A stretch of 64,000 nucleotides of DNA from Marsupella aquatica (GCA_973895155.1 OZ316899.1:1077573-1141572), one strand, 5' to 3'. Positions 17,857-44,890 are shown, numbered from the stretch's first letter. Notes: generated by a model not told the origin, from the sequence alone. Numbers and translations: made by a program.

Positions 17857-17949
17857 GCACTCTACATATCGTAGAGGGGAGACATGTGCGTATTCACCTA
17901 GGCAGGATACATCAGGACGTAGTACTAACCATTGCATTTATATGAGTAA

Positions 17950-20900: not shown

Positions 20901-23900
20901 CTCATGGGATCCGTCCATTCCGCAATTGGAGGAAGTAAACCCCATCCCGAGACCAATCCCGGTCCCACCCATGTACGGAGGGGTTCGGTTAGTTGAGCTT
21001 GACGCGAGCCTGGACCCAAGTCTGCGAAACCAGGTTGAAGTCATCAGGAAGGAGCACTACCGGAAGTACACTATTGGGATGGATAAATCTTTTAACCTGG
21101 GCCACGCTCTGACGGGGAAGGCTGAAAAATCCATCCAAGCTTTGCTCAAGGAATATGAAGATGTGTTTGCATGGAGTCATCATGATTTAACAGGCGTCTC
21201 CCCCGAGTTGGGAGAACACACAATCGATCTGAACCTAGGAGCCCATGCGGTACGACAGCGACAACGTCGCATGAATCCGAGGTACTCCATCTTAGTGAAG
21301 GAGGAAATTGATCGTCTCCTCGCCGCCGATATCATTTACCCGGTAATGGCCAGCGACTGGGTCTCTCCCATTGTCATTGTACCAAAGAAGGGAGGTACGG
21401 ATGGAAAACCTAAGATTCGTATCTGTCAGGACTACCGTAAGCTGAATGACGCAACCCGAAAAGACCATTACCCATTACCATTCACGGATATGGTTCTAGA
21501 TATGGTGGCCCGAAATGAAATCTATACATTTCTTGACGGGTATTCAGGTTATAACCAAATCTGGATTCGTCTCACGGATCAGCTCAAAACAACTTTCACT
21601 ACGGAGTGGGGAACGTTCGCATTTCGGAGGATGCCTTTTGGTCTGTGTAACGCCCCGGCTATGTTTCAGCGCCTTATGATGAATATCTTCCATGATTTCC
21701 TACGGGAATTTTTGGAGATATTTATCGATGACTTTGCCATCTTCGGAACCGTTGCCATGCACCCCGAACACCTACGACGAACGTTGCAACGATGCCGAGA
21801 TGTTAACCTCAAACTACATCCCGCCAAATGCTTCTTCGGGGTAGAGGAGGGGGTGTTACTCGGGCATCGTATGTCCAAACGGGGCATTGAGGTGGACCAA
21901 GAGAAAGTTGCGGCCTGGATGGCGGTGGTGTTCCCCTTGGATCAAAAAGCAGTACAATCCTTCTTGGGCTGCGTAGGGTATTACCGCCGGTTCATTAAAG
22001 ACTTTGCTAAAATTGCGTTGCCCTTAACTGAGATGATGAAGAAGGACGCAGCGGTCGAGGAGACACCCCGGAGACGGATTGCTTTTGAGGAACTCCGTAA
22101 ACGACTCACCACCGCGCCTATCATGGTCACCCCAGACTGGAATAAGGAGTTCCACGTGTATGTCGATGTGTCAGGGTTCTGTATCGGATCCGTACTTAGT
22201 CAGCTAGATGAGGATGGACGTGATCACCCCATCTATTTCGCTAGCCGTCAACTATTTGCAGCCAAAAAGAATTATTCCCCCACTGATCGAGAAGCTTTGG
22301 GAATAATCTACTCGTGTAAAAAGTTCCGACACTATCTGCTAGGCTACAAGGTCATTTTCCACACGGATCATGATAGCCTAAAGTACATGGTCAACAAAGC
22401 GGATGTGACAGGACGGATAGCCCGGTGGGTGCTACTTCTCCAGGAATTTAATTACGAAGTTCGGGTTCGGCCAGGAAGGGTACACCTCAATGCCGATTTC
22501 TTTTCACGACTGGACGGCGTACCAGTCGATCAGCCAATTGATGATATTTTTCCGGATGAGGAGTTGTTCCACGTGGGGGAAGGGACACCAACGTGGTACG
22601 GCTCAATAATCACCTTCCTTTTAATGGGCCGCATCCCTGACGGCATCAATCAGGAGGCCGCCGCTGTGTTTTTACGGAAAGCCGGGCCTTACGTCATGAT
22701 ACAGGGTCACCTACATAAGGAAGGTATTAACGGAAAGTTACGACGCTGCTTAGAGTATAAGGAGACACTTATCGTGATACGGGCCCTGCATGAAGAAGAA
22801 GCTGGAGGCCATTTCGCGGCAGTTACGACAGCCCGAAAGATTCTGGACTCGGGGTATTGGTGGCCTACGTTGCATCGGGATGTACAGCGCTTCATTAAGG
22901 GCTGTGACTTGTGTCAGCGAGCGGGGGCCCCGAGGTGGGCTCATCATCACCCGCTCACATCTGTGCTTCCATTGGCACCATTCGAAAAATGGGGAATTGA
23001 TTATATCGGACCGTTCACTCCCGTTACCCGAAGGCGAAGGTGCAGGTACATCCTATTAGCTATTGATTACTCCACCAAATGGGTCGAAGCGCGGGCTACG
23101 GTAAAGGACGACGCCGCAACCAGTGCCAGATTCTTATACGAACAGATTTTCACCCGATTCGGACCGCCCTTAGAATTGGTAAGCGACCGTGGAACCCACT
23201 TCCTCAATGACACCGTAGCCCAGCTTACGGAGCGTTACCTAGTCAAGCACCGCAAGACTACCCCATATCATCCTAAAGCCAACGGGATGGCGGAGAGAGC
23301 AAATGGTATCATTGGGAAGATCCTCAACAAAACTATAGCTGCGCACAAAACGGATTGGGATGATAAGTTGTACGCGGCGGTGTACTCGTATAATCTAGCT
23401 TACAAAACTACTACGAGTCACAGCCCGTACTTTCTGGTGTTCGGCCAACATTCGTTGGTGCCCGTCGAATTTGAAGTGCACACTCCACGGGTCAGCATTC
23501 GGGATCGCTTACCTGAATCTGAAAGTCTGTCAGACCGAGCTTATCAGATTGAAGCCTTGGAAGAAGCACGACTACTGGCAGCTCGACACACCGTGAAGAA
23601 ACAGGCAACTTCGAAGAAGCAGCACGACAAAGGACTACGGAGGGTCGACGTCGTGGCAGGCGATCTAGTCCTTCTGTACGATAGTAGGTACATGCAGTTT
23701 CCAGGGAAGCTGCATACCCGGTGGTTGGGGCCCTTCCTTGTCAATCAGATCTACCGAAACGGATCTTTGGAGCTTGCGACGTATGCCGGCGATTTACTCC
23801 CCACGCGAATCAGCTACGATCGTGTAAAAAAGTACCACCATCAAGATGACGACGCCGATAGCGATGTTTGCGAGGACGCTTCACAATTAAGCAGGGAGCT

Positions 23901-23934
23901 ATGTGACGCCGCCGGTACGGCGGTTAATGAGTGA
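17950..23934 (+). CDS. gag-pol: Gag-Pol polyprotein, 1994 aa, single frame
   Basis: Gag (FKGRHGDDPDEWLDEFE), three CCHC knuckles, protease LVDGGAGVN, RT FIDDF, RNase H, integrase HHCC plus WGIDYIG/SDRG/AER, WLGPF motif. No chromodomain and no extra archaeal-type RNase H. The stop lies 33 nt inside the 3' LTR. Confidence 0.97.
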   Translation: MPVTRSQAAYLRRLTSERESATTTSSDSSGSEDSQSSRRMNIPPGSSGSGSTGPAAVPPPPPPMAAAPPVARAAQAPPQISQRLRFHYRPFKGRHGDDPDEWLDEFEATAKANGEDAIKLTVLPGVMRGEARPWYNSLPPGTTWAQFQAALLQEFRAIGSEQHSLLKIGQLRMGKKESLRKFIQKFQKLAAKIRPRPGDTLQLTWFLHDLPTNMQFWVRQNNPISMQAAIACAETYRESTYNSRRSQRARRRKGKYETFSDSDSKSDDERKKKRKKKKKHCSTSSSSETESSSDSASSIGSSTSSSSGSDLESESRSKKKKRRVKEGKIKPRARRTIPDPKAAEADKLNEITDRLKALSVHLAEKPVEKKKPFEIRTHAWCSKCFQSGHVVQECPRWKNRVHQVELDDVDNPGPKSESTEYFFEDPPDSVYQISTVGPRNLAGRTAYPYPSNGQSFQVISNPSIPPKPGIWRSPVCYNCEKPGHFARECTEPRRQGDGRGTPLCQVCKTEAHSTANCPLVIVARTSAARPAQAGPVTSDAVVQMIAVEWQDDNTEWVNLVDVAEHPNPLDEAECYRVSTRAERKEEKTEEKRRKKQDTTPVQPAINIPPKKDDDYQRDDPKLFFPRIEELVKKQLEAYEAREYQKAIDKDIKAAETARRQEQEKQDKQEEAKQQPTKETKEDYDIKEDVKSCPVTATVGQLLQNNPQYRRQLRELLMGRRRRRLPRVGSADCNMICEDLGAPDISIEINNCTIKMVLVDGGAGVNIMTEETSVKLGYLTYQPTARAIRLANGARVLPLGTLTRVLTLVGGVEFYLNFLVMRPVRPSSYPVLLGRPWLYGGRVVTDWGKKELRFGEPTVRVSWAMDDYQGETPQGPEEYDSETSEEEELNMIELISSLSEEDVFGVEATRETHLLNYPRAAIESTPSTSTVGDEETHEQLVETEDTAPAKQGAEPTPSISEPRNHEPAQQPPEAENSRPRHKKRVSWDPSIPQLEEVNPIPRPIPVPPMYGGVRLVELDASLDPSLRNQVEVIRKEHYRKYTIGMDKSFNLGHALTGKAEKSIQALLKEYEDVFAWSHHDLTGVSPELGEHTIDLNLGAHAVRQRQRRMNPRYSILVKEEIDRLLAADIIYPVMASDWVSPIVIVPKKGGTDGKPKIRICQDYRKLNDATRKDHYPLPFTDMVLDMVARNEIYTFLDGYSGYNQIWIRLTDQLKTTFTTEWGTFAFRRMPFGLCNAPAMFQRLMMNIFHDFLREFLEIFIDDFAIFGTVAMHPEHLRRTLQRCRDVNLKLHPAKCFFGVEEGVLLGHRMSKRGIEVDQEKVAAWMAVVFPLDQKAVQSFLGCVGYYRRFIKDFAKIALPLTEMMKKDAAVEETPRRRIAFEELRKRLTTAPIMVTPDWNKEFHVYVDVSGFCIGSVLSQLDEDGRDHPIYFASRQLFAAKKNYSPTDREALGIIYSCKKFRHYLLGYKVIFHTDHDSLKYMVNKADVTGRIARWVLLLQEFNYEVRVRPGRVHLNADFFSRLDGVPVDQPIDDIFPDEELFHVGEGTPTWYGSIITFLLMGRIPDGINQEAAAVFLRKAGPYVMIQGHLHKEGINGKLRRCLEYKETLIVIRALHEEEAGGHFAAVTTARKILDSGYWWPTLHRDVQRFIKGCDLCQRAGAPRWAHHHPLTSVLPLAPFEKWGIDYIGPFTPVTRRRRCRYILLAIDYSTKWVEARATVKDDAATSARFLYEQIFTRFGPPLELVSDRGTHFLNDTVAQLTERYLVKHRKTTPYHPKANGMAERANGIIGKILNKTIAAHKTDWDDKLYAAVYSYNLAYKTTTSHSPYFLVFGQHSLVPVEFEVHTPRVSIRDRLPESESLSDRAYQIEALEEARLLAARHTVKKQATSKKQHDKGLRRVDVVAGDLVLLYDSRYMQFPGKLHTRWLGPFLVNQIYRNGSLELATYAGDLLPTRISYDRVKKYHHQDDDADSDVCEDASQLSRELCDAAGTAVNE
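23889..23898 (+). other. Polypurine tract
   Basis: AAGCAGGGAG 3 nt before the 3' LTR TG; same sequence at 9250-9259. Confidence 0.7.
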
Positions 23935-26900
23935 TTCAGTCTAACTACGCTCGGCACGCGTGTTAGGTGGGTCTTAGGCCGCTATTATTAGCATAACGAC
24001 AGTATTTAGGTAATCATTAGGGGTAGGACATCATTAGGCAATAAGGGGGACTTCAGGTTCGGGCTGGCGGCGGGTCGCTATTCGCACACCCGGGTTACGA
24101 GCGTGGAGGGGCCCCTCCCTCGGGTCCGTATAACGAACTTAAGGAAGCGGCCACTGACGCACGCTGACTCAGACCGGCGGAGTGGCCGGTACACCACAAG
24201 CGTGAGCGGTTCAACCTATGGGCGTCGAGGAGACGTCGGGGATCGACAAGCCCTCAAAGTATAAAAGGGGAGCCAACCCTTTGTAGTGCACCAGTCCATC
24301 AGTCCGCGCGCCAGCTTCGACCCCAGCTCTCTCGTTCTCTCTAGGTCGCCACTACTATCTCCTTTGAATGTCGCACACGATCCTCTCCAGCTCGGCCATT
24401 CGATTCTAGACGCAGTTCCTATCTACCGGAAGGCACTTGGCCGATTCATTGAAACACGCCAACCCGCGCCGATACGAGATCGAACGCGAATACGAGAGAG
24501 CCATCCGCCTAGCAGGACGACACCACTACGTCCTTAACTTTGACTATCCGTCTCAGAGCGAGCTTTACCGACCAGCTGACGTATCTGGGTACTTCTTCAA
24601 CGGAGACAAATATATCGGGTTCTGGGAAGCATTGCTTCGGCTTCCGGACGAGGTCTTCAATATCCCGGGTACAATCGACCTGCAGCGACATCACTTTGAC
24701 CACATCCCTGCCCAGGTTCGGGCTGTCATTAACGGCGAGTCCAGTACCAACCGTTCGACAAGGGCGTCCGCACTCGCTTCGGATACCAGCACCTGCAGAG
24801 CTTCATGGGAACTCGGCCATCAACCAACATGACCAACTCAGCCGGACCTGTACCCGTACCCGTACCCGTGCCCATGCAACCCCAGCCTCAACTTCAGCTT
24901 CAGCCTCAGCCGCAGCCTAGCCAAACCCCACCACCTATCACCCAGCCAGCACAGGTATGCTCCGTCATCAACGCTGTGGATCTTAGCGATGACGACGAGG
25001 CTACCCCACCCTTGACCAGGCGGCCCAGAGGAACAAGCGCGCGGGGGGCCGACACTATATCGTCCCCACCCCCTGCTCTGACCCCAGGAGCGGCCCCAGC
25101 AGACAACATAGTGACCGTGGCCGCCCCGGGCCCGTTACCAACCGCAGTAGCACTCCCCAGGCCCGATCGGGAGGATGGGGAAGTATCACCTTCCCCGAGT
25201 CAGTCACGGGGAAAGAAGAGGAAGGAATCCGCCACTGCATCCGGGTTACCGTTGGCCACGGTAGCCGTAGCCAAGGTGACGATGCATCGCATGGGGGAAA
25301 ACGTTCATAGCAACATCCTCCATCCCAAGCATGCGGTGTACCTGAAGACTCAGGGATTTGAGCACCTCACCTCTCTCCCCTGGAACACTTGCAGGTACTA
25401 TGGGGAGGACATGACAGAATTCGTCAAGAATTATGACGACGTACGTCAACAGACTCGGCTGCGGGGAAGGAATATGTCCCTCACAGAAGAACGGCTCAAG
25501 ATGATCTTCGGGTTACCCGAAGGTGACCATCGAGTCGAATCACGGGCTCCCGGGGGCAAGGGGGCCAAGTACCAATCTTCAAGTTTTCCCTCAGAGGGAT
25601 CAGTAGACAACGGGTTCGTGATGAGGACCTGCCTCATGCCCGAGATAGCTGAGCGGCTGGAGTTCCAGAGGTACGCTCTCCACATGATGGAACCCCGGGG
25701 GGAGATCTCCGCCGCCCAGGTTATCCAGGTCGAGAACTATCGACCTAGGAAATGGGCGTCGTACTTCGCTAAGAAATTCCATGAAGAGATGGAGCGGCGA
25801 AGGAAGACGCTGTACATTGGCGGGAAGGCGTATTTCGCTAGCCATATCGAAATCATTCTTGAGTGGTACGCCCGGTTTGATCGACGAACCCTTCCCCGCA
25901 TCAACGTTACAAAGCTGGTCCCAGCTAGGTGGGTTTTTCCGGCATTGGAGAGACGGCCCCAACCCGAGGCCCGAAGTCCAGTGGACACGCCAGCTTCACC
26001 CACCCCACCTCCACAAATAGCTGTAATCGTAACCGAGGAGGCGCCGGAGGGGTCGGTCGTCGCAACCGTTGATGCGACCCAACTAGCCGGGCTAAGTACA
26101 GAAGTTGGTACGGCAGAGGTCTTACCCGAACCCGGGTCTCCCAAGGACCCACCGGTGGCAATTCCGGAGAACCGGACATCGCTGCAGGAGGACACTCCAG
26201 CCCCTTCCAACGTTATGTCCCCAGGGCTGGACGTCACTGCCCCGGCCCCTGCGCGTGTTGATGTCTGCCCGTGCCCAAATCCGGACAGGCACAACTTGGA
26301 CCACCCGGAACTCTTCGTACAGGGTACGTTTCTGAACGGGCTTCTGGGAGATTTCTCTCATCAAATTGCCCAGGATACCGGGGAGTTCATGGCCCGGAAG
26401 GTAGCCTATTTCTTCAATCAGGAGTTGGTTGCTGCCGTAAAGGCAGGTCGGGCCCAGTCGGAGGCCCTTCAGAGGATAGAGCGGTACCGGGTGGAGTCCG
26501 TGTACCTAAAGAACGAAGTGGCGGCTCAAGAGGCTGAGCTTCTGCAACTACGACCCAAGGTTGCAGCCGCCGATGAGTTGTTAGCAAAGGCGTACGCTCT
26601 TACCGCCCTAGCCGAACAGGCCAAAGCTGGGAACGAGGCCGAGATTACACGACTCCGGAACCAGATTGACAGTTTGAAGAAACAAGCTGTCACCTGGCAG
26701 AAAGACCTGGAGGAGGCCGAGGAGCGAGCCCAGCGGGACGCGACGGAGATAGCCACGCTGCAGGCCGAGATGGCGCGGCTCCAAACCGAGGCCGAGAAGC
26801 AGGACCAGCTGGCGAGTAAACTGGCGAGCGACGCCCAGCAGCTGGAGGAGGCATGTCAGGAGGCAGCAGAGGAGACGGACGCGGCGAGGCGAGAGAACGA

Positions 26901-27909
26901 ATCTCTGCTGGACCAGGTCCAGCTCCTCAAAGCGGACAATGACAGGCTTCGAAGGCAGCGGGATGGCCGTTCCCATTCGGGCGGCTCTGGCAAGCGTGCC
27001 AGGCATTAGCGGCGGAGTAGGAATAGATTAGGATTAGGATTGGTTTAGTCAGGCTCTTGGGACAGGCACCTGCCTTAGGTACAGCAGCGCTGCCCTGCTG
27101 TCCAGCCTGCGTAGATTAGGATCTTCTAATAAGACACAGCCGTTTTCCGGCCTGACTGTCAGCTTAGTTAGGACCTTAGTCAGCGAATCTTCGGCGAGAG
27201 GACACCCCGTTCCTTGGCTCTTAGTATTTAGTGCACCCCTCGGTAGAGGCAAGGGGGGGGGGTTTTAGTTTCAGAGTCGAACATCCGCGGGACATGCGGG
27301 GAGTCCCGACCTCTGGGAATGACAGAGTACCAAGGGGAGGGGGTAGGACTAAGCTCGTCGGGCGAGTGCGGAGCCGGGCTCCGTTGTAGTGTGCACCCTC
27401 GGCCTTGAACCTGTGCATTCCAGGGCTGTCGTGTCAACTAAGTGTACGCATATGTTCCCTTTGTAGTAAAATCCTTTCCCATCATTTTCCTTCGTGTAAA
27501 TCGAGATTGTATGCATGTGTGCGCATATGTGTGTGGGCTTCTCGTATATGGGTGGCAGCGCCAGGCCGAACGCACTACCCGAGACGTGCACAGGGTGCAG
27601 CCTGCGGGTAAGTGGTTGCGAGCACGGGTTGAGGACCTGTATCATCGAATCCGGATCGAAGGCGGACAGCACGAAGGCTTAGAAGCCCTTAAGCCGGGGT
27701 CGATCCTGCTATCGACTAAGGTACGTTCCGGCGGCGGAACACAAACCATACCTAGGAGGTGTCCGTATTTAGCAGTATGCGCACTTAGCGCTAGTTTACG
27801 AGAATAAGGTGCATTACGTGCTTCCCTTCCTGCCCGAACCCTCAGATTTACGAGGGATGTGCCCGTCTAAGCTGAAGTCTGAGTTAAGGCCGAAGCCTAC
27901 GACGTGACA
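23902..27909 (+). repeat. 3' LTR (4008 bp) containing a long ORF
   Basis: Direct repeat of 13809-17826, followed by TSD TCAAC. Confidence 0.96.
24368..27009 (+). pseudogene. LTR-borne ORF, 3' LTR copy; premature TAG at 24407-24409 and 7-nt deletion at 24783/24784; 734-aa C-terminal part open
   Basis: Direct comparison with the 5' LTR copy: TGG became TAG, and GAACTTC (14691-14697) is missing. Confidence 0.88.
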
Positions 27910-29645
27910 TCAACTCCCCCCTCGGCCTCTTTGTTCGTTATTTAGGTTAACTTATGTATCTTGTTTATGGACAAATGTCCTTGACAATGGTGAGATGTGT
28001 CAGTGTTGCACAAATGCCTGTTGTGACGTTTCATCACGCCGCTATTCAGTAGCTGTAGTTAATCCTAAGACTGGTGCCACGGATTTTCATTGGGTGTGGG
28101 CCTATGATCATAGGATCACTCATATACCCCAATGGCCCAAGAAGCTAATCTCTCGCTTTGCTGTAGCACGGTTTGATCTTGGGTGGGATGATTGATTAGG
28201 CACATTATCACATGTACACTCGGCCGTCAATTTAAAGAAGGCTCACTTTTTGTTTGGACCACTTTTGCAATAATTTTATCGGTGTTGGTCTCATTTTCAG
28301 ATGTTGACACATACGATAATGTAATATTGGCCGTCAATTTATATCGTGCTCATATTTTTTTGCGATAATTTTATCGGAGTTGGTATCGCTTGTGGAATGA
28401 CCTAATGCTTGTACGTGAATGAGCACTTTCTGAGTTCATTGTATCGATGTTTGCATGCCGGTTTTTGGTTTTTTGGTTTGTCAGAGCGATAAATTTATCG
28501 CTCCTTGCATTCAGATTTGCAGACTTATTCATCATGGGTCCTAGTGGGAAGAGTGGATCTGCCGAGGCTAAAAGTCTCATGACAAGCCTCACGAACGCGA
28601 TTTGGACAAGCGAAGACATTTGTGAAGAGGTCAAGTTCATCAAGAAACTGTGGTACTTCCGCGACGCCAGGTTATAGTCCAAGGATATGGCAGACTGTGA
28701 GTCTCCTATCCTTTGGGTCCAGATGCAAAAATCCGCAAAGGTTACTCTCTCATTTGGCCCCGTCGTTGGTGTGGCGATCTGTGAGTACTTGATTAGCCAG
28801 GGAGAGGCAAAAGTGTTGAAAGAGGGTCTGAGTTTCTTGACAATATGTGGAGGCAAGGGATTCACCTCTGTCATTGTCACCATGGAGAACTTTCTTGAGA
28901 AATCCCTTGAGAGTTACCCTGAAGACGCGCTTGTCGTGGAAGTTAGGTCAGCAAAAGTAATGAATCTTATGGGCCCAGCTTGGGTGTGCCAGTTTGTCCA
29001 AGATTGTGATCTCATCATGCTACTAAGGGTGAACGCAGAGTACAAGAGGCTCACAGGTGAAGAATTCAGACCCATCCGGAAAATAGTTATTAAGAGGCCT
29101 GGTTCTAACGGGAGTGGAGCTTCATCGGCAAAAAGCGCTGGAGGTACGGCTTTGGACGAGCCCAAAAGTGGTTCGGGGAAGGGAAGTGGCAGGGAGAAAG
29201 GGAGAGGGAGAGGGAACACCAGGGACAATGTTGCTGGTCCCTCCAAGGGCGGGAGAAGCGGCAGCAGCAATCATCAATGTCATGTAGCCGGTGCAGGTAT
29301 AGGCATTTCGGAAGCGCCTTACATAAATGTAAACGAGAGTAGAGGATCTGAGCGATCGGGGCCATCTGGAGTCAGCGTTAAGAGAAAGAGAACAGGTTGG
29401 AGTTTATCCACAGCCCCGGAAGGAGTGGAAGCCCCGATCGATATGGAGCCTCCGGTGATTGACGAGCGTTTGCCTCGTTCAGATATACAAGCCGAGGTTC
29501 GATCGGTAAGTGCTACCAAACTTTGATTTTCTATTGATGAAAGAGGATTTCGATAAAAATCTCGTTGTTTCTTTTGTAATCTAATTTCAAACGGCATTTT
29601 CTAGATTGATGAAGAGGAGGAGACTGCTCTTTCGATGTATGAGAC

Positions 29646-31995
29646 TGTCACGCGATTGACATGGGTCTTAACACCAAAGACGTCACTATGGGTGCCAAAA
29701 CCATCTCCTTGTACCTAAGGATCACGAAGGGATGTTGTGAAGGCCGGTAAACACCAATTTATGCCCTTAACACCAGACTATCATAGCAAAGCTCTATCAC
29801 ACATCACCCAAGCTCAATCCCAAGGAACCAAGGTTGGGGATCAGATCTGCGCTCATGATAGTTCTGGTGAGAAGGGGTCTTCATATCGGGCCCGTACACA
29901 CAGGGCCTAGCGCTACGATGCGCATAGGTCTATACGTATGCTTACTGTCATAGGTATGTTTCTATTCCGCCGCCGGAATGTACCCATAAACCAGTGACTC
30001 CTGACTGATTCCCAGCTTAGGGACTTCTAAGCCATTGCCCCACCACTCTGCCATTCCACTCTCAGCAATCAGAGCTGTGACAGCCCTCACCCAACCCACT
30101 TCAATGCACCCGGTACACCTCTCAGTGGCGCTGCTAGTCTCATCATACACTCAGATTGCCTCACACACACACACATCCATGAGAGAAATGAGGCCTGAAA
30201 GGAAAACTCAATTGGATTCAAAGATGTGCACAATAGTTCACTGAGAACACTTGATCCGAACACTAGGCCCGAAGGCTGTCTCCTCCAGATTGCGACGTGC
30301 TTGCCCTGCAAGCCCCGTGCTTGCCATGCAAGCTCAATCCTGAACTCAACCTCCTTCACTGCACTTCATTCTTGGGGGCACATACAGATCTCACACCTCC
30401 AATTCAGAACGTCAAGTTACGCATGCATAGTTGACTCGACTTCAAAGCTGGTACCAGGCCTAACGGCGATCTACCCCAGACTGCAATGAGGCCCGGCCTC
30501 ACGCTTGCCCTGCAAGCTCAGCTCTGGCCATAGATCCCTTAGTGCTCTCCACCAGACAAAGGCCGGGACTCCCCATGGGTCACGTAGCCTTGCCAGACTG
30601 AACTGTAAATGCTCCTCCTGCTGCCCCTTACTCAGTACCTCAGCCTCCCTAATGTGCCCACCGCAAATCGAATTGAAATCCTCCCCACGGTTTACAATCA
30701 CCAATACATCACCTATCACCAAGGCTCTGTATCGGGGGAAAAGAACCCAGTTGTGCTGCCCACTAGAAAGAGCCACAATCCAGCTCGCAAACCTAGCAAC
30801 CCGTTGTTGTGAAGCTTGGCTGATTACTCCCTGAGTAATAGCACAACCAAGCTCTCCCCAACACGCAGCGTCCAAGTCCAGCCTTGCTTGCACAGAGCTC
30901 CTCCCCGCTGCTCAGTCTAAGTGAGATCACACAACTGAAGTCCCCCCCCATCTCTACCGGGGGGGGGCTGCTCTATATACTCTCATACTGAGCCCAAATG
31001 GCTGGGTACTACGCTGCTGGAGCCCCATCCCAGCCCTAACAGAGCCGCCACTATCTCTAACTACTGAACCCTAACTCGCCGCTTTATTTCTATCTCGAAT
31101 TGGCTATGTACTTCGGATTTGGCCCTCCTCCATGGTTTTCGTGAGCTTACGCCTCCTCTCCCGATTTCTGTATTCAACCATTTGCTGCGTGGATAGCAGC
31201 GTTGGAAGCGGCTTGAGCTCCTCTTTCCAATGAGGTCAATTATAGCCGATTTGGTCAAATACACAGAGAGTTATGCCCCCGCAACCGAGAGAGGGTACTC
31301 ACTGCTGCGCTAACCCGAGTTACATAGCTAACCCGAGTTCGGCTAACCTAGCTATCCTATCTAACCCGAGTAGAGCTAACCCGTGGTCTCGGGTTAGGCC
31401 GCTACCCGCTATCCGCTAACCTAGCCTAAGCTGAGCCCGAACCCGAGCTTACCTATGCTAACCTGAGCCCGAGTTTAGGCTAACCCGAGTTCAATCTAAT
31501 CCGAACCTAGGTTAAGCCTAAGCTGAAGCTGTGCTGACCTGAGCTAAGCTGAAGCCGTGCTCACCTGAGCTAAGCTGAAGCCGTGCTTACCTGAGCTAAG
31601 CTGAAGCCGTGCTCACATAAGCTAAGCCGTGGTCGAGCTTGGGTTAACCCGAAACTGAAGCCGAATCCGCTAATTCCGGCCATAAGTTAACCCGTCACAC
31701 TAATCAGGCCGTATCTCTCTTAATACACCTCCGTTTCCCGAGTGTTTTATATCGATTTTACTCGCCTTGACCAGATCTTTCCAATGCTCTTTACAGATCC
31801 GGATTTGGTGACATATTGAAAGAAACATGGTCGTCGACCACCCGCGACATAGTTTTTATTTCCCTACTCTTAACGCCATGATTGCCCTTATTCTTGCCAT
31901 CTTGCTAATTGTTATGTAATATCAATAGCTACTCCTTGCATACAGCAACCTACTTAATCAGATTACAAAATAAGGACCATGTCATTGGCGTCACA
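29646..31995 (-). mobile_element. Solo LTR (family B), 2350 bp
   Basis: TGTCACGC...GCGTCACA termini; perfect 5-bp TSD GAGAC (29641-29645, 31996-32000); homologous to 58168-59791. Orientation is inferred from a minus-strand TATATAGAG and is uncertain. Confidence 0.88.
31305..31680. repeat. Degenerate short-unit tandem array (CTAACCCGAG and GCTAAGCTGAAGCCGTG units) inside LTR B
   Basis: About 10 TAACCCGAG-like units and 4 copies of a ~22-bp unit. Confidence 0.75.
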
Positions 31996-34838
31996 GAGAC
32001 TGACGCCATCAAAGCGAAGCTCAGTCTGCTGATGCAGCGAAGGGTTCAAAGGACAACTGTCCTCTTGCATGTCGACAATTTAATTTTTGATGAAGCTGGA
32101 GAGAAGTCAACTTTGATCAGACCAGTGGACAAATTGCATGTGGAGAATATCAAGATTCTTCTAAGGAAAAACCCCACTAACTTCAGCGCACCGTTTGTGT
32201 TGTGTGTGGATCCTGAGGATTGTCCCACAATCGAGGATTGGGACATTCTAAAGTCCAGAGTATGGAAGTATAGAATTATTGGAGGAAATCATGGTGCTCG
32301 GGCAAAGGCCGAGTTGTATAAAATGTATGGGAAGCAGATTTATGGTGAGCTGGAAGCTTGGGTATACGCAGGACTTACCAAGTCGAAGGTCCGGAAGTTG
32401 GGCTTCCAGCACAATTATGACCAGGAGTATAGGAAGAACATGAGTCATATCGATAGAGTTCGTGCGTGCCACAATATCTTTGTTGAAATGGATGTAGGAT
32501 CAAACAAGGATGTTCGCGAAGCTTGTTGTCGGGAATGTATGCTGGAATACACTCTTGGTGTTCGTGACAGCATGGCCAAACATGACCCAACGTTCCAGAT
32601 TGCTTTTCAAACGGGTGAAATTTGGGATCTTCCGGAGAAAGTTTTCCAGATGTGGGAGAAGGGGACTGTCTTGGGACAACCCAAAAAGATTGTGGCAACA
32701 ACAAATGCAAAGGGAAAGGTTAAACCTTTAATGTTGAAAGAGATTAAAATGAATAAACTTGCAGGTGACCTCAATTTAAATACTTTTTGAGGTCTTCAAG
32801 GACAGTCAACTAAGGAGCATGTTAAGCGGCTCTTGAATAGGGTCATTGGGAAAGTGATCACCTTGGATCAAATGCACAAGGAATGGGAAAAGCTAAAAAA
32901 AATCCAAGGTGAAGAAATTATTCTTGCAGATATTTGGGCAGCCCGATTGGGCAACGTGCAGAGAAATGTTTCCAAATGAGATGGATGTTTCCGTCCTGGG
33001 AACATGGGTAGAGAAGTTGAGCGAAGCGGTAAGCACCCATCTCTCCCCGAGATTTTTATCGGCCTTGCCATTCCATTAGTAGATTTTTGCATTCCTTGTT
33101 CCATTCAAAAATCATCGCGAGATTTTTATCGGCCTTGCCATTCCATCAGTACATTTTTGCATAACTCGTTTCATTCAAAAATCATCCTGAGATTTTTATC
33201 GGCTTTTATATTCGTTAAGCGATTTCATTCTGATTGGAATTCTGTGCGACCTTTGTTACAGCTGAAGATTGGGTCAAAGCGGAAAAATAAAGTTGTTCCG
33301 CCTGTGCAATATAATTTGATGGGGGAGGTTATTGTTCCCTCCGCTGACATCCCGTATGTGTTCAAGAATTTTGTGCTTGCTGCAATTGATCGGTACAACC
33401 GGCTCCAGGCACTAGGCGAGGACGCACGAGAAGCCGTGGAGCAAATATGGAAAAATGCTGACGGAGATTCTTTCCCTTACTATCTCCATGTTGGGGATGT
33501 TCAAATTTTGGATTCTTTTGTGGAGGCAAAACCTTACACTCTTGCCGTCGCCGACATTCCGTATGGTTTTAATGCGCCTGGTTCGGAGTTTGATGAAGTG
33601 TCCTTCACGGAAAAGAACGTTGTAGATATGGTGAGAAGTTTTTCGAACATGATAGCTGCTAAGCAGTGGAGGTTTGTTGTGATCCATTCATTACAGCAAA
33701 CAAATATGGTCATGTCTGCACTCGAGACTGTGTGCAACTGTGGGGTTGAGTCTGGAATTTGGGAGAAGACCAACATTCATGAGCATCCCGCTGGTGCTCG
33801 ATTGGCGTGGGGTTTTGAAAACTGGTCGATGGGATTCTACAGCGAGGAAGGCATCCGAAACATGAACATGTACAATTTCCAACCGGATGAGTCTCGCATC
33901 AATATCATCAAGGTTCCATGTGTAACCAAAAAGTCTGTTGATCCGTTGGGCTATGTTGTGAACCCGTACCAAAAGCCTGTTGGTTTGGGTGCTTGATTCG
34001 TTACTAATTTCTCGGAGAAAAATGACTCGGTTATGGATCTTTGCTGCGGAACCGGATCCATGTTAGTTGCGGCTCTTCTCAATTCTAGCCAGGGTTGTGC
34101 AGTCGATAAAAGTGCTACGCAAATTGATTTTGTGAGACATCGGATTATGACTCTAGAGTCAAACTGGAATTTATACGATGAAGCACAGATTGAAGGGCAA
34201 GGCTGCGAAGGTCTAGAGATTCAACCACCGATTGGAGGCCAATTGGGAACATTGGGGACTTTGACTTTCACTGTTGAAGTCGTGAAGGAGGTCGAGAATG
34301 AAGAAGAAGCTGAAGAACCTCCCAGAACGCCTAATGAGGATGATCTCAATGACATGTTACTGGATTAGGAAATTGTTATCTGGTTGTATGATAGTTAGGT
34401 TAGGTTAGGTTAGTTTAGGTTATGTTAGATTATGTTAGTCCCACTTCTCAATATTTGGAGAATGGAGTGTGATAAATTTATCGCAATTACGTTTGAACCC
34501 GATAAATTTATTGGACATTGCATTCTACTCCCTTGTTTGTCACGGTGTTCTAGTTGGGGGAATGGAGTTGTCGATAATCTTATCGGACTTTGCATTCCAC
34601 ACTCTAGCTATTCCACTCCCTTATTGTCACGATGTTCTAGCTGGGGGAATGGAGTTGTCGATAATATTATTGAACTTTGCATTCCACGCTCTAGCTAGTT
34701 AGTCATTACAATCAATTTAAAAAAAGATATAATTATAGCTTCGGAGAACAACATAGTCCCAGATGTTCACGACTGCGACCATCCTCGTGGGAATGATAAC
34801 CAGCTTAACGATAACCATTATAACTTAAAACCTTTACA

Positions 34839-37822
34839 CTAGCTTCTACTATCAACGACTACACTGTCCATCATTGCATTTTGAATGATTTGTCTTGTTT
34901 GTACAGGGAGAGTACTATTTGCCAATAACGCAAAGTTATACGCATAAACTGCAATTTCTGCTAGGGACAGTTCATCCTCCAGTACTTTGTTAGACGAAGC
35001 CTCTTTCTCCGGATAATATCTGCCTTCAATTGCAGACTCCTCTTCCAAATCTATTGCATACCAAGTGATTTTAATTTGCTCGGGGATGTCGTTAATTTTT
35101 GTGAGAATCTCAGTCACTTTTGCCATCCAGAATGGTCTTCCCTTTGGATCCTGATGGGCTGCTACACATATCATTGCAAATTTAGTATTCACCTCTAGAT
35201 CCTTGAAGTCTCCAATTTCCGTGACTTTTCTCCAACTTCCGGAATACATGACTGTCCTCACACCCGCTATTTCATCAACCAAGATAGGTTCCATTGCTGC
35301 TTCCGTAGGATTGGTCGTAGGTTCTCTCTATACATTTACCTTGGGCCAACTCCAATCAAAACTCCATTGTGCAGGTTTCAGGTGGTGCTGAATCACTTCT
35401 TTTTGTTTGTAAAAAAAATGACCCCACCATAGCCGATCTTCATCGTCAAAGTAATTGAATCCATCTTCAATTGCTCTCCAATACTTTTGAAGAGTTGAAA
35501 AATGATTTTGCACTGCCCGCTCGTCTTGTTCCTCAGTATCATTCTCTTGATCATCATTGTCTCTTGTCGCTCTCGTGGTCGACTTCAATGCCATTTGTGG
35601 TGCGACCCACATTCCAAATGAAGGAATGTACCAAACAAATTCCACGGGCTCCCCCCAATCTATTGTCGTGGAAAGATGTTTGGCATGGAAGATAGACCGA
35701 GCACTCCCATCTTCGAGTACTATGGTAATCCAAAATTGTTTCTGAGCACTTATGCCGTGGAGAGTACACAGAATTTGACCATCCATATCCTTGTCATTTG
35801 CTTGATCCTTGTCAGACACAAATTTTTGAAATTGGCAACCTCATCGACAAAAAATATTTTTTCCGTAGGATTGTAGGATTCCTCTATGATTGCGGAAAGA
35901 GTGTCCAATCGAAAAGCTTTTCGCTTGTTCAATTTTGAAGAAAACTTGCTAAACATTTGATCAATTTGGTCATGGGTGTGCCCAACCAACAGAAAACCAA
36001 CCTTTATTTTTTGGAAAACACCTATCTCCACCAACATGTTTAAATATGCCATAAAATATTTATTCTTGTTTTCCCGAGCAGTGTTATCAAGGTGGAGGTA
36101 AAGCACTGGAGGAGCGGACCTTCCCAGGTATTCAGAATATGCTGAATAACATGGATGGTCAGGTTGCTATCATTGTGAATATTTGGATAGTTCAAAAAAA
36201 CATTTGAACTCAATTGTTTGTTGAAGATCAAACAACCCACTACGTGTACAGGGATGAAATACTTCTCATCCGTATTCTTCGGACACCAAATGAAATGAGA
36301 TAACTCTGTCTGCTTTTGATCCATTCCATCAATACACATGCCCAAATATTTCTCTGGACTCTTGTAACATTTGCTCTGGTGCTTTGCTAACTTATCCCTC
36401 TCCACTGCTTGTGCCTTCCGATGCTCGTTTAGCAATGTTGAGAATTTTCCTAGAATAATAAAAATGTTTAGAACTTTGCTGGCCTGACAGCGATAAATTT
36501 ATCGGGTTCAGTATTCAAACACTTGATTCGATAACCGTAATGTTAAACCGTGACAACGATAAATTTATCGGGATAAGTATTCAAACAATATATTCACACA
36601 TTACCAAAGAAGAAGCATGGGAATACTCAACCCGATAAAATTATCGGGGATAAGTATTCAAACTGTTCAAATGATATATTCACACACATTACCAAAGAAG
36701 AAGCATGGGAATACTCAACCCGATAAAATTATCGGGGATAAGTATTCAAACTGTTCAAATGATATATTCAAACACATTACCAAAGAAGAAGCATGGGAAT
36801 ACTCAACCCGATAAAATTATCGGGAGTAACACACGGGTTTAGAAACTTACTCTTTTTTGCTTCAACTGTTGCCTTATCACGAAGTGCTTTGAATTCAGTA
36901 CACGGGGCGTAGGTGGAGAAACGACTCCTTTTGGGGATGCGCACGTTAGGAAACTCCTTGTTCCAAATGCAAACAAACCACGAATATGTCACGCCTTGTT
37001 CTTGGCGCATTAGAGTTTTAGAGTGGAAGGCATCAAAACTTCTGTTTTTGTCCAATTGTCAGGTAAATGAAAGATATCCTTGTTGGGGAGACTCTCTACA
37101 TTTGTGGTAAAAAAATCATCCAGCCACTGAACAAGACCAAGATGTGCGGTCAATTTTTCTCTACAAAATGTATCGATCTGTATCCGAGAAAACATGTTCT
37201 TCAAGATTTTTTGGAGACAATTATTTCCTAGGGAAAATAATTTCTTAAAACCACTCCGACAAAAGGATCTACCGCTAACTGAGTAACCACTTGCACCGGC
37301 ATGCCCACCCTTCACACATCCTCTTAGAAGTACGTTCTTCTCTTGGTAGGATAGCCCATAGTAATATGTGCGTTGTTTTGTCACATCCTGTAGACCCAAA
37401 TTCCTCAGACAAAAATTATCACAACATGGATACTTATAAATTTCTTTCATTTTGTTTCTATTCAATTTATCATTTATCACATTGTCTTTCCTAGTAATCC
37501 GGTCTCTATCTTTTTTACTAGGCTCATTTGACTTCTCTATAGACTGAAATCCGATGAGAACATTGGCATTTTCCTCTCCTTTAGGTACCTTGCGAATAGA
37601 TGCATCACTCTCTGTTGAGCTACCATCCTCCACAGATCTCCTCGACGCATTTAGAGGGGCACTAAAAAGGTGACTAAAACTATTCCCTTCTACAGCTCCT
37701 TCTAAACATTCAGACACAACTTGTGCTATGATATCAGATTCTCTATCTCCTTCCTGATCTTTGTCCTCTGATCCACTTGACTCATCTAAAAACACAATTG
37801 GACTCCGTGGCTGTCTATACAT
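34839..37822 (-). pseudogene. Sola-like DDD transposase (DUF7869-type), 2 exons, 3 frameshifts and 1 stop; C-terminal BAH/Tudor-like beta domain
   Basis: PCCDNFC, IW..EFP.V.IPK..RFS, CIDGMDQ, LYLHLDNTARENKN, LLVGHTHDQIDQMFS motifs. Phase-1 intron ~36451-36850. Frameshifts near 37035, 36107, 35812; TAG at 35328. Confidence 0.75.
36557..36824. repeat. ~88-bp tandem repeat x3 in the transposase intron, each unit with CGATAAAATTATCG
   Basis: Motif at 36557, 36633, 36721, 36809. Confidence 0.9.
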
Positions 37823-38830: not shown

Positions 38831-41800
38831 TTAAAGTTTGAATCTGTTTTCAAAATATGTGCCAACTTGAGCAAATTTAGGGACACAATGAATCACTTTA
38901 GCAATGTTTGCTACCTCCACAACAATATAAGGCACTTTGGATCTTTTGTAAAGTGCTTTTCTGCTTGTAGAGGCTGTTGTGTCTTCATCAACCCACTGGA
39001 GCTTTGTGCAGTGCAATAACTTCCAATCTCCATCCCGTGGCAGCTTTTCCATCATTCTAACAAATGCTAGATGCTTCATGATCTTCTTGCCACCCTCATC
39101 AATGACTTCACAAGAAATCAGCAACCTCAGTTGACCATAAGATGTTACAGGATCAAAGCCAACTTCTTCCATCTGAAGAGAGACGAATCCAAACCATTCT
39201 TTACCATGGAAACTTCTGCAGGCACGGGTGTACATTGGCCAATCTCCAAATCGAATGCCTTCCCCAGCAGGCACTGCTAAGCTTTTCCAAATTTGTATTA
39301 TCTCAGGAACTGCACAGTTCTCATCATTCAAGTGCATAACAAAGGCTTCTCTCAGGTGCAGTTGTATTTCTGGTTGACACTGAAATAGTTCACTCACTTC
39401 CACAGGCACAAAGTCATTGTTACTTGCATCAAGCCAACTCAATGTCAACCTTATATCCTTTCCAGATAGGGTGATCTGTCCTGTCAATACAGCCTGCACA
39501 TATCAAATCATAAAGCACATGCATAAGTGCCTACAAGACATCCTTTGTAAAGTGACATGTGTTGCTACACAGAAAGTACAAACTGAAAGTGTAGCAGAAG
39601 TGGGAGGGAGGTAAGGGGAATAGTACTCGGTCCAGTGCAGTAACATCTTCTGCATGCACTCTTAAGTCTTCTTGATAGCTCGCTTCGTCTAGTAAAATTC
39701 TAGTCCTCTGGCTATGCCTTGCTATTTGCCCCATGAAATTCCTCTTGTTGCTATGTCTGTATGGAACCTTCATGAGGGCAATGTGAAGATGTTCGAATAT
39801 ACCTGTGTCATATTCTAAAGGCAACCCACATCGTTTGATACAATCTTTCAGGTGACTCATGGCATGGACTTTTACAATGTTGAAACTTGACTTATGCCAA
39901 GTTTTAGCGTGTTTTATCATCGATCCTACTGCTTTTTTCATTAACTGATCCATTTGATTCAAGGACCTCTCAGAATGTTGTTTACTCTGGAATGCTAGCA
40001 AATACCAATCTATGAAGTCCACAAAAACCTCAATGAGCGGATTTGGAATGACGCCAAGCAAACAAAATACCACAACCTGCATAACAAATTTATGCTCAAA
40101 TCCATGAAAGTTAGCATTGCTTTGAAAGTAACCACTTTGGTTACTCCCAGGCAATCTAAAGGAAGCATAACGACATTCCTTGTGTATTTTCTGGAGTCTT
40201 CTATCAAGTTCTTGCATAGGTTTTTTCACAAGGCTCTGGGAAGCAGCAGCCGATCTCACAATGCCCACTAGAGTCTTAAATACACCTAGTATGGACTGAT
40301 GAAGACCGTCTAATTGTATGCATCGATAGGGATTTCCATACAGCAAATCACCTCCACAAAATCCCCATAGAGCACACTGCAAGACATCACAAGAAAAAAA
40401 ATCACTCACAGTTGACAAAGAGAAGAATAACTGAACTCATTCAAAACTCCCTTTGCACAATCAATGCTCATCTCAGTAAGAAGTGCTTACCTGTACTGGA
40501 TAAATTGACTGCTCCTTAGACATCTGTTTTTGATCTTGCACAGAAGACTGCCGCATCTCTTCTAAGATTGCTTCCATTCCCTTCTCATCCCTATAAGAAA
40601 ATCTTCTTGCAACATTGCTGAGGGATTCTTTTGGACAAAAACAACAACTGCATGGATAATTTGACTTGTTTGTATCAAATGTGCATGTGATTCTACTCCC
40701 CTCTGTCTGGTCACAGATATACAGACATAGTCTTGGAAAGACCCACTGGGATTGACCAAATGGGTCTTTCATGTGAACTCCTGTATAACTTGCAGCCTTC
40801 AATGGTGCCAAAACAATCTCCTCACATTTGTGAAACAGTTCCAATTTGGCTGTACTAGGAACCTCTGTCTCCAATATACCTACAGCAAAAGAAATTAGTG
40901 TAAGTATTTTGAAATGAATATAAGTTGTAAGTGTTGGACTTTTTAACATCCTGGGAATATCTACACAGACAAAGAGCAGTCAAATTCAACTGGAGGGGAG
41001 TAATTGCAGTTTAAATCTCACCTGGATCATTCGGACCAATAACAGGAAGAATAGCCAGCAAAGCGTGACCTTCTGGCAAACTTCTAAGACTGCAATTAAT
41101 ATTGCCAATTGTCATGACTAAAGGCCAACCCTGAGTTCTCTTGTTGTGAGACAAGGCAGTCTGATCAGAGTACAAAATGATGGGTGCAATCACTCCTCCT
41201 TTGCAAGTAGATTCAACGTCTTGCTCCATTTCCCTCCACCACTCAGCGGATTGCAAAGTAGTGTATAATCTCTCACTGCCCTCTATAGCAACTGAAGAGT
41301 GAAGTGCAAACTCTTCTTTATTTTTAGGAGAAGAAAATAGATCTTCCAAAACACGTAATGGATCACGATGCAACAAATGAACTGGAGCACTTTCAGTCTC
41401 CTCGCGGACTTCAACCTTTTCCCAATTTTGGTCACCCCTCTCACTTGTTAAACTTTCCTCATATTTACAAACCTCAGCAGCAGTATGAACCTGGACTTTT
41501 TTGGTATCGAATTGAGGGTGGTGCAGTAGCCGAAATAATCTGTTCATATCTTTGTGAGATAATCCTCCTCCATTGTGGCATTGTCTCATAAAGAAGACAA
41601 GTTGAAAAGTAGCATCAATTTTTTTATTACAGTGGGCAGGAGATGTGAATTCATTCTCAAACAGGTCCATGAATTCCTCAGAGGACTGCTCTCCAACTGT
41701 CTCAACATTGGCCTGTATAGATTCCGGTATACATGTGTTCCCAACGTTTACACTCGTACGAAACCCTTCATGCTCTGCCTCCATCACATGATCAGTCTGT

Positions 41801-41925
41801 TTAGCCCTTTGCACAGCTCTCTGTTTTGCTAAGCAAAGTCCATTTCGTCCTTGGTGGGTCCGCAAAGCTGTATAATCCAGAAATCCCAAAGCTCCACAAA
41901 AATTACACTTAAAGTTTGAAGCCAT
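38831..41925 (-). CDS. Plavaka-type (CACTA/CMC-related) transposase with N-terminal C2H2 finger, 4 exons, apparently intact (~900 aa)
   Basis: CNFC...LRTHQ finger; APIILYSDQT, WPLVMTIGNI, LYICDQTEG, CSCCFC, LDGLHQSILGVFK, FNIVKVHAMSH, EYDTGIFEHLH motifs. GT-AG introns 40880-41021, 40377-40490 and ~39497-39626 all keep the frame. Confidence 0.85.
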
Positions 41926-44519: not shown

Positions 44520-44890
44520 ACTGAGGGCACAGAGGAGACCGAAATTATCTGGCAATACTTGTAATGCTTCGCAGCGATTCAAATGGAGGTCTTGCAGGGT
44601 AGAGAGAAGACCAAAGCTCTCAGGCAATCTTTTGAGCCGTCGACACTCTAGCACCAAACGTGTGAGTGAAGGTAACTTTCCAAAGTCATCGGGCAGCACT
44701 TGTAGCTTATCGGCACCATATATTCTCAACGTCGTCAGAGCCTTAAATTGGCCAAACTTTCCCGACAGTGTCTTTAGTTCTGTGCAGAAATCCAGCACAA
44801 GTTCTTCCAAGGACCAAAGAAGGCCAAAACATGCAAGCGCCGCTTCTAGACTCGTGCAGCTATTTAAGAGTAAGAAGATTCTGTAAACGA
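44520..44890 (-). pseudogene. Plant NLR-type leucine-rich-repeat fragment
   Basis: Four to five ~24-aa repeats: LEELVLDFCTELKTLSGKFGQF, LTTLRIYGADKLQVLPDDFGKL, LTRLVLECRRLKRLPESFGLL, LQDLHLNRCEALQVLPDNFGLL. No NB-ARC seen. Confidence 0.8.

Follow-up and report, generated by a model that had tools for sequence, protein, structure and literature searches.

A 64-kb stretch of the Marsupella aquatica genome (GCA_973895155.1 OZ316899.1:1077573-1141572; hereafter the window, in whose positions all coordinates are given unless a locus is named) carries a decayed accessory gene of a 42.2-kb DNA transposon bounded by terminal inverted repeats (TIRs). The gene joins a domain that is predicted to adopt a ParB/sulfiredoxin (ParB/Srx) fold to a putative beta-class amino-methyltransferase. 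It belongs to what appears to be a conserved, selected family of streptophyte transposon cargo, in which an amino-methyltransferase is combined with a ParB-like module, often in the company of arrays of putative binding sites. We consider it reasonably probable that the gene is an accessory transposon gene whose ParB-like module recognised palindromes and directed the fused adenine-N6 methyltransferase to the element.

One gene reconstructed from separate open reading frames

On the plus strand, between 28.5 and 34.4 kb, the window contains a run of separate open reading frames (ORFs), which become one gene after reconstruction. Exon 1 (28687-29505, plus strand, like all other parts of the gene) comprises 273 codons and encodes an N-terminal region, the second half of which is rich in Gly, Ser and Lys. 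It is followed by a phase-0 intron (29506-29604) with GT-AG ends (GTAAGT...TCTAG), the removal of which keeps the frame, and then by exon 2, which encodes the ParB/Srx-like plus helical domain (about 32080-32700), including an IIGGNHGARA motif at 32275-32304 (GGNHGARA at 32281-32304). Exon 2 is split into two pieces (29605-29645 and 31996-33028) by an insertion of 2,350 bp (29646-31995, plus strand) that resembles a solo long terminal repeat (LTR). This insertion starts with TGTCAC and ends with GTCACA (TG..CA), is flanked by a 5-bp target duplication, GAGAC (29641-29645 and 31996-32000), and has a relative at 58168-59792; the two are 86-88% identical over 58168-59341, and the homology to this block ends precisely at the right edge of the insertion. 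When 28687-29505, 29605-29645 and the sequence from 32001 onward are joined, 549 stop-free codons result, and the first stop is the TGA at 32788. Intron 2 (33029-33261), again with GT..AG ends, contains three repeats of about 70 bp, each with the GAGATTTTTATCGG variant of the palindrome described below; its acceptor and the intronic motif are kept in the 72%-identical relative L001 (read-archive assembly SRR18067573), which is the closest relative, with 72-76% DNA identity to the window. The last exon (33262-34368) encodes the methyltransferase domain followed by an acidic tail and holds, in this order, DIPY (motif IV, 33553-33564), QKP (33970-33978) and DLCCGTGS (the S-adenosylmethionine (SAM)-binding motif I, 34036-34059).

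An earlier, sequence-only reading of this DNA had claimed that a single intron-containing gene emerges once 29506-29604 and a solo LTR are taken out, that its motifs run from IV through QKP to I, and that the copy is dead. The 549-codon frame, the GT-AG ends and the GAGAC duplication bear out the joined gene; its intron-containing nature is strengthened by the second intron with its conserved acceptor, and the coordinates of the three motifs agree with the order proposed. As for the fate of the copy, the gene has suffered, besides the LTR insertion, an in-frame TGA in exon 2 (32788-32790), a single frameshift within an A8 run or immediately behind it (about 32893-32925) and an in-frame TGA in the last exon (33994-33996). 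With these four lesions, the window copy is dead and unable to make the protein, and the underlying gene model is sound. The product of the intact ancestor was about 1,000 residues long and composed of the N-terminal region, the ParB/Srx-like and helical domain, and the C-terminal methyltransferase. When the window was searched by tblastx for further copies of the gene, none was found, only the solo-LTR family recurring (58168-59792), and an Rfam search of the window gave no match.

The N-terminal region stands apart from the rest of the protein. The 273 codons of exon 1 have no homologue among the family proteins described below or, within the length window applied, in a set of 5.8 billion proteins, and the region may be lineage-specific. 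Its membership in the gene is suggested by frame continuity over two junctions and by position; that an N-terminal domain with no known likeness belongs to the same gene, as had been proposed, is supported to this extent, and no relatives of it were detected. The palindrome cluster and the start context upstream of exon 1, which resemble the arrangement at a second related locus, L002, also speak for this membership. A 5' extension of exon 1 from 28535 is possible; if the ORF once began there, a TAG at 28675 cuts the extension.

The C-terminal domain is related to beta-class N6-adenine methyltransferases

Taken singly, the ORFs of the window had no methylase or ParB match in Pfam and none in the PDB (phmmer), so the case was built through homologues and profiles. 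An exhaustive HMMER search of 1.84 billion representative sequences with the exon carrying DIPY and QKP returned no more than 102 proteins at E<=1e-3. The exon belongs to a small, distinct family and is no stray member of the bacterial crowd. Within this family, P0001, an intact ORF of 347 amino acids with about 68% protein identity to the last exon, scores 30.5 bits against PF01555 (N6_N4_Mtase; cut-off 26.7), and most of the longer members tested exceed the cut-off (27-66 bits, best 65.7). The family alignment shows the beta-class order: a motif X region (GD), D-[ILVFP]-P-Y-G-F, NPYQKP and LDxFxGSGT. The succession of motif IV, QKP and motif I, with QKP just before motif I, is common to all aligned members. 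At motif IV, the form D-[I/L/V/F/P]-P-Y-G-F is found familywide; the Asp, the second Pro and the Tyr are kept, and DPPY occurs in P0060 only.

The family profile was then compared with solved enzymes. It matched beta-class N6-adenine enzymes with E values in the range 2e-15 to 1e-10, namely M1.HpyAVI (2e-15), CcrM (5e-13), M.MboIIA (6e-13) and M.RsrI (2e-10), and the alignments to these structures span most of the catalytic domain, taking in the motif IV region, QKP and motif I. For the matching cytosine-N4 enzymes the best value was E=1.5e-6, with PvuII at 6e-4. Between the last exon and L001, where this exon is an uninterrupted ORF of 347 codons, the proportions of nonsynonymous and synonymous differences (pN and pS) are 0.18 and 0.71, giving a ratio of nonsynonymous to synonymous substitution (dN/dS) of about 0.10. 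This value points to strong protein-level constraint on the family, despite the decay of the window copy. Judged by motif order, by the PF01555 scores of its relatives and by the family profile, the window gene encodes a decayed, putative amino-methyltransferase of the beta class (PF01555, N6_N4_Mtase), as had been claimed; the family profile matches solved beta-class enzymes down to E=2e-15. For the putative activity, adenine-N6 specificity is likelier than the formation of N4-methylcytosine (4mC).

A predicted ParB/sulfiredoxin fold precedes the methyltransferase

The ORF with the IIGGNHGARA motif and the methyltransferase exon have their homologues in the same proteins, the former in the N-terminal and the latter in the C-terminal half. 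At least 10 independent proteins, which come from five named streptophyte species and from metagenome and read-assembly contigs, have both domains in this order; because the two halves are shared within the same proteins, the fusion of a ParB-like region to a methyltransferase is a trait of the family. The 264 residues encoded in the window itself were modelled with AlphaFold2 from a shallow alignment of 15 sequences, and the model reached a pLDDT of 72 and a pTM of 0.54. Among the top 50 Foldseek matches of this model in the PDB, nearly all are ParB, Noc, KorB, PadC or sulfiredoxin (best E=2.8e-5, probability up to 1.00), and they include ParB-CDP, Caulobacter ParB and Myxococcus ParB. The alignments to ParB cover about 200 columns, corresponding to the N-terminal domain plus the helical DNA-binding domain, and those to sulfiredoxin have a root mean square deviation of 4.3-4.5 A over about 120 columns. 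In the viral Foldseek library, most of the named matches are phage ParB proteins, accompanied by a mycobacteriophage 'DNA methylase' and by ParB/Srx proteins of giant viruses. At the level of predicted structure, then, the ParB/Srx-like domain of the sequence-only reading is borne out, and a ParB/sulfiredoxin fold is accepted as a prediction for the N-terminal domain.

The family has the motif G-G-x-H-x-x-x-A-(R/K), of which GGNHGARA is the window version. In its letters, GGxHxxxA(R/K) resembles the sulfiredoxin GGCHR motif, and it is placed where a nucleotide-binding motif (in ParB, the GERRxRA of box II) would be expected, to which it may correspond. A weak match to the ParB-associated DUF6551 (E=0.0055) was obtained with the Ginkgo member only.

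The gene is cargo of a 42.2-kb transposon

The element occupies 12237-54433 and has been enlarged both by a nested 14-kb LTR retrotransposon and by the solo LTR. Its left TIR (12237-12261, plus strand) is 25 bp long, reads AACACGATTTTGGACCGACCAAGAA and adjoins a TGGA target duplication at 12233-12236; the right TIR (54409-54433, minus strand), likewise of 25 bp, adjoins the duplicated TGGA at 54434-54437. The window has exactly two copies of this 25-mer, inverted relative to each other, where 0 are expected. The target is also present twice without interruption; both of these copies read CTGCTGGACCAGG and are the basis for the TGGA (or GG) duplication, an alternative and equally symmetric boundary being one with a 2-bp GG duplication and a TIR one base longer, AAACACG. 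The flanks of the element are the two halves of an ORF within a retrotransposon LTR, which breaks off at ...ENESLL and resumes exactly across the element at (D)QVQLLK.... The target duplication of 2-4 bp fits the CACTA/Plavaka group, for which 2-5 bp is expected (PMC12730594). The termini read AACACG...CGTGTT and have CA/TG two or three bases in from the ends, compared with the terminal 5'-CA..TG-3' of the Plavaka/CACTA-related group (in fungal Plavaka, TGT..ACA or CATCA..TGATG). Blast of 12300-12700 against the window found no TIR; the TIRs lie further out and were found by repeat search.

On the minus strand, to the right of the methyltransferase gene, the element carries two genes that could serve its movement. 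One, at 38831-41961, consists of four consecutive long ORFs and encodes a Plavaka-type (CACTA/EnSpm-related) transposase, with PF18759 scores of 77.1 bits (ORF 41011-41961) and 55.5 bits (ORF 40473-40949) against a cut-off of 26.3. The other, at 34839-37822, encodes a DUF7869 protein; it is frameshifted and has an internal gap (36485-36824) with a palindrome array. A separate nested element around the Plavaka gene was considered, and the repeat search of the window found no internal TIR pair around it. That the gene is transposon-borne, another claim of the earlier reading, is confirmed by the 25-bp TIRs, the target duplication, the interrupted target ORF and the Plavaka transposase.

The nested LTR retrotransposon (13809-27910, plus strand) splits the element and has LTRs of about 4 kb (13809-17827 and 23902-27910) and a polyprotein at 17950-23934. 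Its LTRs are 98-100% identical, from which the insertion is young. Each LTR holds an ORF of 713-734 codons (14781-16922 and 24805-27009), the product of which has a Pro-rich N-terminus and a coiled-coil C-terminus; a long coding ORF in an LTR is unusual. Related LTR copies lie in the window at 9263-12236 plus 54434-58167 and at 180-2375, and it is into this LTR-borne ORF, in another copy of the LTR, that the 42-kb transposon was inserted. The transposon also contains a leucine-rich-repeat (LRR) fragment (44385-44810, minus strand) that resembles the LRRs of plant resistance proteins (LRR_14, R13L1/DRL21) at scores below the Pfam thresholds and may be a captured fragment of a host gene. Long ORFs with no Pfam match are present at 47642-48364 and 47169-47549 (both minus strand) and at 61619-62821 (plus strand); the former two, both within the transposon, could be further accessory genes. 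A pair of 28-nt inverted repeats 447 nt apart within the element (47101-47128 and 47576-47603) may be a small nested miniature inverted-repeat transposable element.

Homologues in streptophytes are usually linked to a DUF7869 gene

The named members of the family come from Chara braunii (many copies), Riccia sorocarpa, Diphasiastrum complanatum, Adiantum nelumboides and Ginkgo biloba, and in five streptophyte genomes the scaffolds that carry the homologues are of megabase size. Intact natural members exist, for example Chara GBG70967.1 and a metagenome ORF. No relative emerged when metagenomes were scanned with the ParB piece, and in the literature no description of this ParB-like/methyltransferase family was found. 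The family is conserved from stoneworts to ferns and Ginkgo and, by its substitution pattern, is under purifying selection.

Linkage was assessed at the six loci for which DNA was at hand, namely the window and L001 to L005. At five of the six (the window and L001-L004), a DUF7869 gene lies <=10 kb from the methyltransferase gene. The two genes are convergent in the window and at L001, divergent at L002 and L003 (Riccia) and in tandem at L004 (Chara), the DUF7869 genes being at 1311-2813 of L001, 378-3534 of L002, 4055-6628 of L003 and 20349-21999 of L004. Within the short flanks of these other loci, no Plavaka gene was seen. The expectation that homologues would be linked to a transposase is in this form upheld, with the putative transposase gene DUF7869 as the neighbour.

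For DUF7869 itself, the predicted model (pLDDT 85) has a beta-beta-beta-alpha-beta-alpha-beta-alpha core and weak fold matches to RNase HI, a foamy-virus integrase core, NurA and a terminase nuclease, and a DUF7869 profile had no match among PDB sequences. D9, D87 and H123/H125/D129 (GHTH..D) are invariant. The family is multicopy in liverwort and fern genomes, with dozens of copies in Riccia, and is also present in bivalves, sea urchins, amphioxus and acorn worms. Judging from the model, DUF7869 is probably an RNase H-like DD(D/E) transposase, likely of an unclassified superfamily.

Two of the loci call for separate comment. The Riccia member (L003, CM100800.1 10001-13655) has ordinary host genes on either side, one for an aminotransferase and one for ribosomal protein L22e. 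A DUF7869 remnant lies 4 kb upstream of it, palindrome arrays are lacking, and it may be either a decayed insertion or a domesticated gene. In Chara braunii, the 1,825-residue GBG86584.1 was considered as a tandem double fusion and rejected, as it joins two gene copies that lie 26 kb apart on L005 (BFEA01000570.1, 10115-12168 and 36058-38094) and is a gene-model artefact.

Palindrome arrays accompany the element and several of its relatives

Palindromic sequences are strongly over-represented in the window: the motif GATAAATTTATCG has 50 matches on the two strands against 1.4 expected, and the 16-bp CCGAT-N6-ATCGG has 19 against 1.4 expected. All 19 of the latter fall inside the element, where they occupy the subterminal regions at either end, the stretch ahead of the gene, intron 2, the interval between the genes and the DUF7869 gap. 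The left subterminal array (12684-13203) consists of 56-bp tandem units with the 16-bp palindrome CCGATAAATTTATCGG and variants of it, and the right one (53511-53899) of 74-bp tandem units, each with GATAAATTTATC; further CCGAT-N6-ATCGG sites are at 53062, 53167 and 54104. A cluster at 28268-28500 lies just upstream of the ParB-methyltransferase gene, in a putative promoter or control region, and another, at 34470-34700, lies between the convergent ParB-methyltransferase and DUF7869 genes.

Similar placements recur elsewhere, with palindromes or close variants at four of the six loci and arrays at three. At L002, inverted arrays of a palindrome variant lie just upstream of the homologous ParB-methyltransferase ORF and in the DUF7869 gap (2254-2373). 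At L001, one copy occupies the same place as the intergenic cluster of the window, in a spacer of 140 bp, and one variant is in the intron. The Chara locus L004 has arrays of CCGATTACGTAATCGG, with 8 matches against 0.55 expected, 7 of them between both genes. The same half-site and spacing with a different spacer across distant hosts suggests a co-evolving protein-DNA pair. Palindrome arrays within introns or gaps of both element genes (33029-33261 and 36485-36824) are likewise kept at distant loci.

Discussion

In the mechanism that we favour, the ParB-like/helical module would recognise the palindrome arrays on the element's own DNA, as in bacterial ParB-parS, possibly acting as a clamp gated by nucleoside triphosphates (NTPs). 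Recognition of the arrays would bring the fused methyltransferase to the element, where the enzyme would methylate an exocyclic amino group, most likely the N6 of adenine, given the D-x-P-Y of the family and its best profile matches, M1.HpyAVI, CcrM, M.MboIIA and M.RsrI. The mark would then label the DNA of the element and either oppose host silencing by 5-methylcytosine (5mC) and heterochromatin or couple transposition to replication; a purpose in self-marking, anti-silencing or transposition control is what we infer. The architecture derives most plausibly from phage or prophage ParB-methyltransferase fusions. A bolder form of this idea sees a eukaryotic counterpart of ParB-parS, in which the NTP-gated module loads at the arrays of the ends, promoters and introns and takes the fused adenine-N6 methyltransferase along the element, a private N6-methyladenine (6mA) mark is written that the 5mC machinery of the host can neither write nor read, and the co-evolution of half-site and protein predates the split of Chara from land plants; this we regard as doubtful.

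Several points weigh against directed methylation by a ParB-like module. The fragments of the window reach no Pfam threshold; of the Pfam assignments that the gene was expected to receive, PF01555 is passed by its intact relatives, whereas the window's own pieces fall below it and ParB has no match in sequence. Pfam scans of the window ORF and of the ParB-like region of each member gave no ParB_N match, the family's ParB-like profile found no match in the PDB, and hhalign against a phage ParB_N domain gave a probability of 0.95%. The evidence for the ParB assignment is a predicted structure of moderate confidence, with low full-length TM-scores (0.3-0.4). In the catalytic motif, Ile, Leu, Val or Phe replaces the first Pro of DPPY, which leaves activity unproven. 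The element has two candidate transposases, Plavaka and DUF7869, either of which may move it, and one of the two genes may have arrived by nesting. The gene has no arrays near it at Riccia L003 or Chara L005, and the palindromes lie where the subterminal repeats bound by a transposase are expected, so that their reader could be a transposase.

This last point can be developed into an account in which the arrays bind the transposase (DUF7869 or Plavaka), the ParB-like domain is an NTP switch or a non-specific clamp and the methyltransferase hits a short motif anywhere, with the purpose of timing by hemimethylation, as for Dam with IS10/Tn5, or of protecting transposon DNA intermediates. The distance of the arrays from both element ends, 450-970 bp, is the classic position of transposase-binding repeats as in CACTA, the ParB fold is a plain ATP/CTP/GTP module in many fusions (PMC12704722), and two loci have the gene and lack the arrays. 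Even so, we hold such an account to be rather unlikely: promoter-like and intronic arrays in both genes, kept between distant loci, exceed the needs of end recognition, the 16-bp palindrome has a geometry like that of parS-type sites, and Foldseek alignments of about 200 columns to chains comprising the ParB N-terminal domain and helix-turn-helix suggest a DNA-binding helical domain. A different kind of doubt concerns the enzyme. The methyltransferase domain could have lost DNA methylation and become a binding module or have acquired an RNA or protein substrate, with DIPY as the sign of lost catalysis. The first Pro of (D/N/S)PPY is indeed replaced throughout the family except in P0060. In known enzymes, it is the backbone of the residue at this position that contacts the target base. 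The Asp, second Pro, Tyr and Gly-Phe are kept, the GxGxG loop that binds SAM and the QKP are intact, and dN/dS is 0.10; loss of DNA methylation is on these grounds improbable, notwithstanding the precedent of inactive methyltransferase domains in DIRS1 retrotransposons (PMC4738411).

The sequence-only reading had also cited eukaryotic writers of 4mC, and one could suppose that the enzyme writes 4mC like DN4MT1 of Marchantia and N4CMT of bdelloid rotifers and that elements of this kind brought these writers into plant genomes. Specificity has switched repeatedly between 6mA and 4mC in the N6_N4_Mtase fold (PMC8885841), the family has a member in the liverwort Riccia, and cytosine-N4 enzymes are detectable with its profile. 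But DN4MT1 has TSPPY where every member checked, Riccia included, has D-[ILVFP]-P-Y, and N6-adenine enzymes, the nearest structures, score 5-9 orders of magnitude better than cytosine-N4 enzymes. No special relation to the 4mC writers was found; membership in the DN4MT1/N4CMT family was rejected on motif and profile evidence, and we give 4mC writing as small a chance as loss of DNA methylation. That the whole gene is an artefact, be it contaminating DNA of bacteria or phages or ORFs that line up by chance, has next to no probability: single fragments do lack a Pfam or PDB match, but the GT-AG introns (one kept in a relative), the open joined frame of 549 codons, the embedding among eukaryotic retrotransposons, the cut by an LTR with its target duplication and the homologues on megabase scaffolds all stand against it.

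Relation to known systems

Fusions of ParB with an N6_N4 methylase are enriched in phages and prophages (PMC12704722). Streptococcus phage Javan93 QBX22681.1 has the same order, an N-terminal ParB and a C-terminal PF01555 domain, and is borne on a mobile element like the window gene; the methylases of ParB-terminase loci (Iyer and Aravind) belong to the same phage and prophage fusion class. A top phage match to the methyltransferase domain of the family is a ParB-methylase fusion beside terminase genes, and the methyltransferase domains of phage fusions and family are 24-29% identical. Unlike the phage fusions, the window gene has introns, encodes about 1,000 residues, among them a long linker and an N-terminal region without relatives, has a ParB-like domain that is beyond the reach of sequence methods and DIPY in place of DPPY, and travels on a cut-and-paste transposon rather than next to a terminase.

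The closest precedent is given by the giant Plavaka elements of red algae, so that transposons with a methylase and ParB-like cargo are already known. Like the window element, these are of giant size and Plavaka type and carry a PF01555 methylase, a ParB-like protein and adjacent tandem arrays of inverted repeats, and in the proposal of their authors, too, the repeats of the element are bound by its own ParB-like protein (bioRxiv 10.1101/2025.02.11.637652). In red algae, however, SET is the fusion partner of the methylase (PAG2) and a 2-oxoglutarate (2OG) oxygenase that of the ParB-like protein (PAG3), whereas in the window ParB and methylase are parts of one polypeptide, and among the ORFs scanned in the element (those >=90-130 aa) neither a SET nor a 2OG domain was found. 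The constant partner, DUF7869, and the streptophyte host lineage also differ from the red-algal cassette, with PAG1-3 being compared by their description only. Fungal transposons that carry TET/JBP dioxygenases (KDZ, Plavaka, EnSpm and others; PMC12730594) similarly have DNA-modification cargo, thought to counter host silencing, but this cargo is a 5mC oxidiser, and these elements have no ParB-like domain and no reported palindrome arrays.

Retrotransposons with Dam-type methyltransferases resemble the window family in bearing adenine enzymes derived from prokaryotes on transposable elements; they differ in the class of enzyme (Dam/D12, with NPPY) and of element (LTR/DIRS), and they are reported to be absent from Streptophyta (bioRxiv 10.64898/2026.05.21.726589). 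Nor is a streptophyte clade of this kind listed among the eukaryotic adenine methyltransferases catalogued in 2015. The solved enzymes nearest to the family, M1.HpyAVI (5hek/5hfj), CcrM (6pbd), M.MboIIA (1g60) and M.RsrI (1eg2), are bacterial, have the canonical DPPY and are single-domain proteins or have other DNA-recognition domains. DN4MT1 and N4CMT share with the window family the PF01555 fold, a prokaryotic origin and a place in eukaryotic nuclei; they differ in being host genes and not transposon cargo, in their SPPY-type motif and in having no ParB, N4CMT having a chromodomain.

In the prevailing view, transposons of land plants and related algae are controlled by means of 5mC, and 6mA is not abundant in these lineages. 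The widespread DUF7869 family gains from the present comparison a likely role as an RNase H-like transposase, as its predicted model suggests. If the enzymes of the methyltransferase family are active, streptophyte transposons would write a DNA mark of their own and would offer a model of epigenetic self-identification or anti-silencing, as an independent case that joins the red-algal Plavaka elements as the second of its kind, and the logic of ParB-parS would extend to eukaryotic chromatin. Should the mark be a private 6mA, such elements could explain some of the contested 6mA signals of plants.

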